NCBI GenBank assembly: GCA_023515725.1
Contig: JALDTO010000069.1
Coordinates: forward strand, 1 to 64,000
DNA length: 64,000 nt
Source of the DNA: Amoeboaphelidium protococcarum X5
Lineage: Eukaryota > Fungi > Aphelidiomycota
Direction: 5' to 3'
Position numbers and translations under genes: made by a program. Numbering within the stretch: position 1 is the first letter of the stretch; each line of letters starts with the position of its first letter. The notes beneath the pieces are model-generated. The model saw only the letters and a program-made list of their open reading frames with translations, ran no database searches and was not told where the DNA came from. This document shows, piece by piece, positions 42,529-44,581 of this stretch.

Positions 42529-44581
42529 TCATCTTCTATGTACAATAAAATTAGCAGGAAACTATCCTTCATGCAAAATCATGTACAAGCCAATATAGAG
42601 AATATTCTTGGAAGCATTCTTATCTCCATCAGTCTAATGATCAAGATTGAATGAGCATATAAAGTGATCTCGAGGACGCGTATGCCGTATTCCTATGGCA
42701 AAGTCCGGACATCTGTTGCAGCGTTTACTGGAATAATTCTCAGGCGTCAATTTGACAATGGCGTACTTAGAGAGAATAGACCTGAACTAAACCAGCGGAG
42801 GATGCCTCATTCTTCCAAACTGAGCGAATCCGTGCTTGCCAGCTGCTCCAAAGAACACCAAATACTTTGAGGCATCGTCAGGATTCAAAATTGGTTGATC
42901 GAGAAGTTGCTTGACTGCATTCTCTAACCGTGCTACACGTCTAAACCATGCATCGTAGTTGCTTTATCTCCTCGTACTGCTTAACATCTTAGATATCCAT
43001 TAGGATCGATTCGTTAGATAGTTAATCATGTAAGACTTCAGCTTCCAAGGATTGACAGTTTTATGCGACAAGCCTTGATGCTCTGTAACCAATTGTATCG
43101 CTTCCACTTGAGGATCCCTTTATCCTAAATTAGCAATCAATCTGGAACTTAGCTGGTTGTCTGATTTTTAAATGCTCATATTCCTCCAACGCGTCTTCCA
43201 TCGTACAATCCATCGTGCATGCCGCAAGAGCGCGTCTTATGCCAACGTCGACGCCAATAAAACGAACCATTTCATGTCGATCAGGTAAGCCTTCAGCCAA
43301 TTCAGGATCATTTAAGTGCTGCTGCATTTATTACTATGGGCGTCGTAACGGAGCTTCTTGCAAATCCACTTCTTCTTAATCGTCAATTAGATCTAGAATC
43401 TCATAGACTTCATCTTGCCAATCGTCAGCATCTTCCTCACCCTGAATTTGATCATCAAATTGGTCCTCCAGCATATACGCAACAGCTTATCTTTAAAATT
43501 CATCATTATTAATAAACTAGACGTTTGCTCGTTGACCACCTGGACGCGACGCATTAACAAAAGACACAGAATACATGTCCAAATAAAGAGTGTTAGTAAA
43601 AATGTCTTCAAATCCCTCAATATTAAAGCATTATGACGCCCAATTTCTATCTTATAGTATTTCCACGTTAGAATTTTAAAATGAGGTTTCTGACAACATC
43701 AAATGCTAGCAGTCACACTTCATTATTGGGACCAGCGACATCATTTTGTATTAAGCCTTATCCTTCTCTTATAGCACTTCGATTTCCTTCAAGAAGCAGT
43801 GCATCAACACGAGATATTCACCAAAGTTCTCTGAATTGATACGGTCAATGGGATGATATCTTACGTAATTCTCAGCCTATCTTTTAAACAGTACCATTTT
43901 ACCAAAAAATTCGTGAATAATGCCGGGAGATTAGCCACGTTTCACAAAGCTTTGAAACTGATTAAAATCAATAGCGCGATTGAATCGCAGGCAAACCAGA
44001 ATGTAATGAAACAACTCCTTTGCATCGAATTAAACGTATAAAGCTGCGCTTTCTATATACGCGTTCATCCAAAGTTTCAAGCATTTAAAGAAATTCAACT
44101 TGACATGATTCTTCAGATCAGTATGATACTCCAAAGCAATTTATTATATCACCCGGTCCAGAAGAGGATTGTTTGCAAAACGAGCTTGGCTGTTATTCCA
44201 AACCAACTGCTTATAGTTTTGGGAGCGGCGATTTATTAAAGGAAAGTCTACACCAGAATGCAACGTGTAGAAATCAGTGCCTTCAGAATTGCCCCATTGA
44301 ACGCGAAATAGCCTAGTAACCATAGCTAAATTTAGACGAAAAAAATCCAATTTGATATCATCTCGTGCAGCCTTGTAATGAGGATCAGCAAATCGTCTTT
44401 TAAACTCAGTAAATACATCCAATTAATGACATTGTGTTACCACGTAATACAGAAACCAGTGGCTTGCATCTACTCTAAATTTTAACGAATCTTCATACAA
44501 GTTAATCAACATTCTCTTCACAGCAGGTGGTCCAATCCATACATCGTCAAACTTCTTTTTAATTACGCGTGTGTTCTGCAT
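42529..44581 (-). CDS. Fanzor1 (eukaryotic TnpB-like RNA-guided RuvC endonuclease), ~683 aa, one frame disruption at ~43130-43240
   Basis: RuvC-I FIGVDVG (Asp ~43247-49), LVFFG...G...HPP..FRSIL, RuvC-II Glu just before the Zn finger (LTPENYSSKRCNRC, ~42709-42750), CSFNLDH and RuvC-III DGDKNASKNI (~42600-42630). ATG-to-TGA span is 2053 nt (3n+1). Confidence 0.85.

Follow-up and report, generated by a model that had tools for sequence, protein, structure and literature searches.

The window, meaning the whole 64,000-nt stretch that was analysed (positions 1 to 64,000, forward strand, of contig JALDTO010000069.1 from Amoeboaphelidium protococcarum X5, assembly GCA_023515725.1), carries a gene of the Fanzor1 lineage with two companion genes, one on the same strand and one on the opposite strand. 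The features are listed below; a related element found elsewhere in the same species is referred to throughout as the sister element.

39115-39460, minus: candidate right end or omega-RNA region, placed by analogy with the sister element (position, GC content)
39751-39780, minus: 3' landing point of a 'ghost' (internal-deletion) derivative, which joins 44376/44383 to ~39780 in runs X1, X6 and X11
40125-40796, plus: companion gene 2, 223 aa, RG-rich N-terminus, inside the span deleted in the ghost
41393-41932, minus: companion gene 1, 179 aa, with a homologue after the Fanzor gene in the sister element
42529-44581, minus: Fanzor1-lineage gene, table 6; 683 aa once one A of the A5 run is removed, 567 aa without correction
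42622-42624, minus: RuvC-III Asp653, profile-aligned
42637-42741, minus: repositioned RuvC-II Glu614 and CxxC...C-x5-H zinc site, Glu six residues before CxxC (criterion of Yoon 2023)
43165-43169, minus: A5 run with +1 frameshift; other copies are one base shorter here and a paralogue aligns gap-free
43247-43249, minus: RuvC-I Asp445 in DVG; the sister subfamily and 55/55 viral Fanzor1 have DPG
44582-45207, minus: non-coding 5' region of the element, present in multiple copies, which diverge from the window at 45207 (approximate left end)

Genetic code and reading frame

The gene runs from an ATG at 44581 to a TGA at 42531-42529 on the minus strand, and the ~683-aa protein described in the initial annotation is recovered once one base is dropped. 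It is not a single open reading frame, a point to which that annotation gave only passing mention. Under table 6, one frame is open from 44731 to 42881 and contains RuvC-I (IGVDVG), and a second, reached by a +1 shift, is open from 43698 to 42532 and contains the RuvC-II Glu, the zinc site and RuvC-III. The 683 frame-corrected codons include 25 in-frame TAR codons (18 TAA and 7 TAG), in keeping with the two dozen or so estimated earlier, and 23 CAR codons. The scraps of 65-92 aa expected of a standard-code caller were likewise found, the longest pieces in the true frames being 92 and 65 aa. The chance of a 567-codon frame free of TGA is ~2e-6. The use of UAR for glutamine in A. protococcarum has been published (PMC5304391), and translation with table 6, suggested earlier as a check, is upheld by the conserved host genes MFE-2, CDK and ALDH, which read through TAR. 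TAR accounts for 255/538 (47%) of glutamine codons in the host vs 25/48 (52%) in the Fanzor gene. It had been argued that the gene is 'code-locked', which is true in that a TAA already occurs at codon 53, but the same holds for every host gene; the TAR codons show a long stay in the host and no special lock.

The extra A at 43165-43169 puts the frame shift after RuvC-I, and because of it the unedited product of 567 aa lacks RuvC-II, the zinc site and RuvC-III. The +1 frameshift in the window copy is real, since short-read contigs carry the extra base and the other copies do not. Contigs of run X1, which may be the sample that the window came from, contain two versions over the Fanzor gene at ~60-76x each: the window version with the extra base at ~76x, and a second copy at ~72x that is ~8% different and has one base fewer at 43165. 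A 1960-nt contig of run X6 covers 42483-44435 with 79 substitutions, its sole gap being one base at 43167, and the 626-aa paralogue P0004 is gap-free across the frame junction.

Splicing could in principle restore the frame. A 46-nt GT-AG intron at 43206-43161 would cover the extra A and yield an in-frame 668-aa nuclease; the host MFE-2 intron uses the same donor (GTACGA), the spliced frame is stop-free, an indel within an intron would be neutral, and the residues removed fall in a region modelled with low confidence. This rescue is nevertheless unlikely. The candidate intron is purine-rich, with 41% GC and 46 nt, vs two T-rich host introns of ~59 and 65 nt, and its codons align with the paralogues. 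The spliced form also scores lower than the slipped form in pairwise comparisons (316 vs 325 and 243 vs 251 bits) and against the profile (44.9 vs 47.2), and the sister copies have no donor at that site. A longer intron of 82 nt (43206-43125) was rejected as it introduces a TGA, and a -1 ribosomal slip at T-TTA-AAA goes in the wrong direction, a +1 shift being required. An assembly error in a homopolymer, leaving the gene intact, is highly improbable: the break is a single base within an A run and in-frame copies exist, but ~76x of X1 short-read contig depth has the extra base, and the version without it is a separate copy, ~8% divergent. The window copy is thus most likely dead as a nuclease and probably a pseudogene.

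Motifs and placement in the Fanzor1 lineage

All three RuvC acidic residues that the initial annotation had picked out in IGVDVG, PENYSSK and DGDKNASKNI are present. They are D445 (codon 43249), E614 in PENYSSKRCxxC (codon 42741) and D653 (codon 42624), the last being the second Asp of its motif. In the frame-corrected protein they fall on the catalytic columns of the Fanzor1 profile, and the D/E/D triad is kept in both aphelid subfamilies. Fanzors are recognised by a RuvC-II Glu six residues ahead of the first CxxC (E-alt; Yoon 2023; PMC10711439), and E614-x6-C621 has exactly this arrangement, as expected from the earlier remark that the Glu had shifted beside the zinc finger. The same study found DPG at RuvC-I 'near exclusively' in Fanzors; the window copy has DVG, and DPG occurs in the sister proteins P0004 and P0006. 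With regard to the motif of Bao and Jurka, D-X(125-275)-[TS][TS]-XX-C4 zinc finger-X(5-50)-RD (PMC3627910), the spacing and SS-xx-CxxC fit, the fourth ligand is His, and the RD position is GD in both aphelid subfamilies. The zinc site had been given as CxxC with C-x4-H, of which the CxxC stands, the second pair being C-x5-H (C642, H648). The Asp of the WED motif TDG is aligned and kept as LDM in the window and TDM in the sister; the Gly is not kept. Both aphelid subfamilies have a long acidic linker (43300-43520, minus strand) that separates the WED motif from RuvC-I; the viral Fanzor1 set does not.

Giant-virus Fanzors were gathered by motif and 18 viral proteins formed the Fanzor1 profile. 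The set is Fanzor1 because its profile matches PpFz1, SpuFz1 and GtFz1: a profile of 17 of the 18 does so at E 1e-57 to 1e-68, with Fanzor2 at 6e-5. The frame-corrected window protein scores 47 bits on this profile over residues 123-670 (shuffles <=0) vs 6.5 bits on the Fanzor2 profile. Its N-terminal half alone scores 13.2 bits for Fanzor1 (shuffles <=5.0) vs -2.1 for Fanzor2. When the sister subfamily was compared with the viral Fanzor1 profile by hhalign, the two aligned end to end at 92% over 526 columns, and ESM Atlas language-model features gave 0.98 to giant-virus DUF8286+TNB clusters of 600-700 aa.

The structural check that had been proposed was made on a natural paralogue and not on the window protein. 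P0006 is intact, has 672 aa and 26 TAR codons, is listed in nr as a hypothetical protein and is 34% identical to the window protein over aligned positions. Its model (pLDDT 66) gives Z scores of 21-23 with Fanzor1 structures, vs 7.8 with Fanzor2 and 8.6 with TnpB, a result that is partly circular in that Fanzor1 sequences were in the alignment; AlphaFold with aphelid sequences only gave a failed model (pLDDT 32). The RuvC-I loop region (434-490) is of low confidence, and helices 504-525 and 528-553, candidates for the kinked REC2 helix pair of Fanzor1, were modelled at pLDDT 76-88. The proposed tree is less clear-cut. In a RuvC tree the aphelid proteins form a long branch that falls beside Fanzor1 with support of 100/99, with no fungal or algal Fanzor1 rows included, but an AU test on the RuvC region does not reject a Fanzor2 placement (p 0.13). 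That test, together with weak tblastn matches to IS605 TnpB, is what speaks for a Fanzor2 that has grown larger, or for a separate TnpB radiation with no more than a resemblance to Fanzor1, an origin made very improbable by the end-to-end alignment of Fanzor1-specific N-terminal and REC blocks, by the profile scores (47 vs 6.5 bits) and by the fold (Z 21-23 vs 7.8).

The gene is real, and its assignment to the Fanzor1 lineage is supported by the profile scores, by profile-profile comparison and by the predicted fold. It is a divergent protein and not a textbook member, because of its DVG, LDM, C3H zinc site and GD against the published signatures. Among 5.8 billion proteins no non-aphelid relative was found, only A. 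protococcarum proteins. A 50-aa C-terminal piece gave a weak PF07282 match below the gathering cut-off and, against 1.8 billion representatives, aphelid relatives only. There was no PDB match to the single sequence, no full-length record of the window's own subfamily in protein database searches, no close relative in viral and metagenome contigs, and no homologue of the 92-aa piece in a search limited by the length of that piece. It had been supposed that such systems were missed because of the genetic code. Standard-code callers do miss the gene, but NCBI annotated the species with the right code and P0006 is in nr. Divergence is the larger obstacle to detection, since the intact paralogue is on record at NCBI and these searches gave no non-aphelid, PDB or (above cut-off) Pfam match.

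The element and its sister

The element is ~6 kb long and spans at least 45207 to ~39750, a span that follows from a deletion derivative joining both parts in three samples; it probably extends past 39510. Depth over 44376-45207 is up to about tenfold higher, one diverged copy leaves the window sequence at 45207, and both window-subfamily junctions seen at that position come after a T run. Contigs that end at 44376/44383 (X1, X6 and X11) continue with letters matching 39751-39780 uniquely. This ghost derivative retains 830 bp at the 5' end as well as the 3' portion of the element and extends >255 nt past 39780. A 7-bp hairpin lies at the ghost junction (39758-39777, minus strand); stem changes between its X1 and X11 versions mostly keep pairing, with one G-U wobble and one double change plus one mismatch. 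The inverted pairs 40868/45209 (23 nt, one arm within the element) and 39713/44726 were rejected as terminal inverted repeats (TIRs) marking the ends, as shared multi-copy sequence reaches 45207 and the ghost passes 39780. An exact 13-bp direct repeat (39468-39480 and 39522-39534, 54 nt apart) is found just upstream of the candidate right-end block. No recognisable transposase, serine recombinase or Y1 TnpA was found in the element, and the companion pieces tested matched no recombinase.

In strain X11 the calpain flank is present and no contig covers 41400-42568 or 42903-44239, which suggests presence/absence variation of the element, with the reservation that contigs show presence and not absence. 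The flanking calpain-like gene (45305-47200, minus strand) exists in one version in X1 and in two, ~9% apart, in X11. Low-depth contigs from a 2024 freshwater metagenome (run X8) are 95-100% identical to the element and calpain flank, and the element is therefore present in a wild population. C-terminal fossil fragments of the window subfamily, with 83% DNA identity, occur at L002 7012-7309 and L004 8016-8301, both duplicated loci adjacent to PRP8, with dN/dS of 0.2 vs the window. As the fossils sit at both duplicated loci, the subfamily is probably older than the genome duplication. Such fossils best explain the depth peak at 42690-42900, for which the ghost was rejected as a source.

The sister element (~5.9 kb) is present in three copies at three different flanks, and is thus mobile. 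Its layout is a Fanzor gene, a 178-aa gene, a basic gene on the opposite strand and, last, a GC-rich block whose abrupt end comes after a hairpin; neither TIRs nor target site duplications (TSDs) were found at the ends of the three insertions. Among the copies the Fanzor has a dN/dS of 0.27; the companion and the opposite gene, both short and with small counts, have values of 0.23-0.47 and 0.24-0.51, respectively. This shows purifying selection on all three genes. Two of the three Fanzor copies (L001 6001-7942 and L005 6001-7398) are broken by frameshifts, one of them annotated with an intron at the break, and only L003 has an uninterrupted 672-aa frame (P0006). Sister Fanzor fragments are also annotation-fused to Ty3/Gypsy reverse-transcriptase remnants (L006, L007 and L008, ~8000-9500), at an orthologous locus present in both strains. 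The Fanzor gene of the window resides in a mobile element, as seen from the deletion derivative and strain-patchy coverage of that element and from the sister at three flanks.

Companion gene 1 is 28% identical to the 178-aa gene of the sister (pairwise E 4e-18), and it has no Pfam, PDB or ESM Atlas match when searched as stop-free pieces. At the position of companion gene 2 the sister has an unrelated K/R-rich gene. As a more speculative and rather improbable reading, the aphelid elements could form a distinct Fanzor1 sub-lineage and a TIR-less, TSD-less element class, in which the 179-aa companion acts as an unrecognised cofactor, anti-Fanzor regulator or mobilisation protein. A dedicated partner is suggested because the companion adjoins the nuclease across subfamilies only ~30% identical and is under purifying selection.

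Known Fanzor1 guides stem from the right end of the element and extend into the flank (PMC10432273), with a length of 75-150 nt (PMC11423790). The best omega-RNA candidate found is the GC-rich and non-coding block that ends the sister element (L003 11320-11660, also in L001 and L005) with a hairpin and a TCCA terminus; its core is 96% invariant vs ~88% elsewhere. In the window the corresponding region, 39460-39115, lies just before the ALDH gene, and the placing of an omega-RNA here is a positional guess by analogy. Its fold is no better than shuffles (z 0.18), it has no similarity to the sister's end and no match in Rfam, and a covariance model of the sister's last 120 nt has no match in the window. 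A position directly after the stop codon (42200-42450) was rejected, having no fold signal, and the element runs on through two more genes.

Activity and relation to known systems

The best explanation as a whole, with a probability of roughly three in four, is a divergent Fanzor1 in a ~6-kb, multi-copy, transposase-less element of which the window copy is broken. By analogy with SpuFz1, GtFz1 and TnpB, in-frame copies would encode a nuclease whose bound omega-RNA is a transcript of the right end of the element. The guide would be drawn from flanking host DNA and the nuclease would cut TAM-adjacent sites that do not have the element, the repair of the break then helping its copying or retention; transposition itself would be provided in trans. 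The window copy would produce a shortened protein without catalytic activity and, as with the ghosts, could contribute no more than omega-RNA or companion proteins.

It is improbable, and more so than rescue by splicing, that the lineage has lost or changed its nuclease activity and become an RNA-guided DNA-binding or regulatory protein with a conserved companion. Several motifs next to the active site deviate, the branch is long and the companion gene has been kept across ~30%-identical subfamilies, but all three acidic residues are retained in both. Changes of this kind are tolerated, since comparable deviations are seen in active SpuFz1, with Asn two residues past the RuvC-I Asp, and in IS605 TnpBs, which do not have the Arg before the RuvC-III Asp.

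On the preferred explanation of a divergent Fanzor1, the lineage is extended to aphelids by a long-branch variant unnamed by single-sequence and Pfam searches, and a genome with a reassigned code holds a full Fanzor element set of in-frame copies, broken copies, ghosts and fossils. A natural intact paralogue is usable in assays, which makes the repair of the window copy unnecessary. The companion gene and unclassified ends bear on the role of Fanzor1 in its host and on the movement of transposase-less Fanzor elements. The surprise is limited, as Fanzors have already been found in hundreds of eukaryotes and a pseudogene is what the window copy probably is. No main text naming both Fanzor and Amoeboaphelidium was found; among the entries listed in Supplementary Table 1 of Saito 2023 (PMC10432273) are two TnpB-like proteins of A. 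occidentale, outside the Fanzor branches.

The closest known proteins are SpuFz1 (8GKH), PpFz1 (9CF0), GtFz1 (9CER) and the giant-virus Fanzor1s, with which the aphelid protein shares a size of ~600-700 aa, the WED-REC-RuvC-zinc order, the Glu six residues before CxxC, the D/E/D triad and a match of profile and fold over the whole length. It differs from them in ~15% identity, DVG for DPG (window copy), LDM/TDM for TDG, CxxC..C-x5-H for C4, GD for RD, the long acidic linker before RuvC-I, the use of table 6 and the frameshift of the window copy. Fanzor2/IS607 TnpB (ApmFz2, 9B0L) and IS605 TnpB (ISDra2) have a similar RuvC-zinc C-terminus, but the match to these is far weaker (Z 7.8-8.6; 6.5 bits on the Fanzor2 profile) and the aphelid element has neither of their enzymes, serine recombinase or Y1 TnpA.

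As an element, it resembles the Spu-1 and 'ghost' loci of Spizellomyces punctatus (Saito 2023, PMC10432273), which have no internal transposase and in which full, partial and internally deleted copies coexist; Spu-1 however measures ~2.1 kb, with a single ORF and inverted repeats of 30 nt, whereas the aphelid element measures ~6 kb and has two companion genes, and the three sister insertions showed neither TIR nor TSD. The latter also separates it from TIR transposons (Mariner, IS4, Sola and MuDR). The sister element, with a sharp conserved 3' end, a terminal hairpin, a variable 5' end and no TIR, is like CRe-1/2/3, which are non-autonomous Helitron2-type elements with Fanzor1, and the unclassified MCi-2 and MCi-5 (Bao and Jurka 2013, PMC3627910); the T run before both window-subfamily junctions at 45207 is a further likeness. 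The search for an asymmetric terminal repeat, a TSD or a Helitron transposase in the aphelid element gave none, and for this reason no superfamily is assigned. What is distinctive about the aphelid system is the combination of motif changes with a conserved companion gene in an unclassified element.
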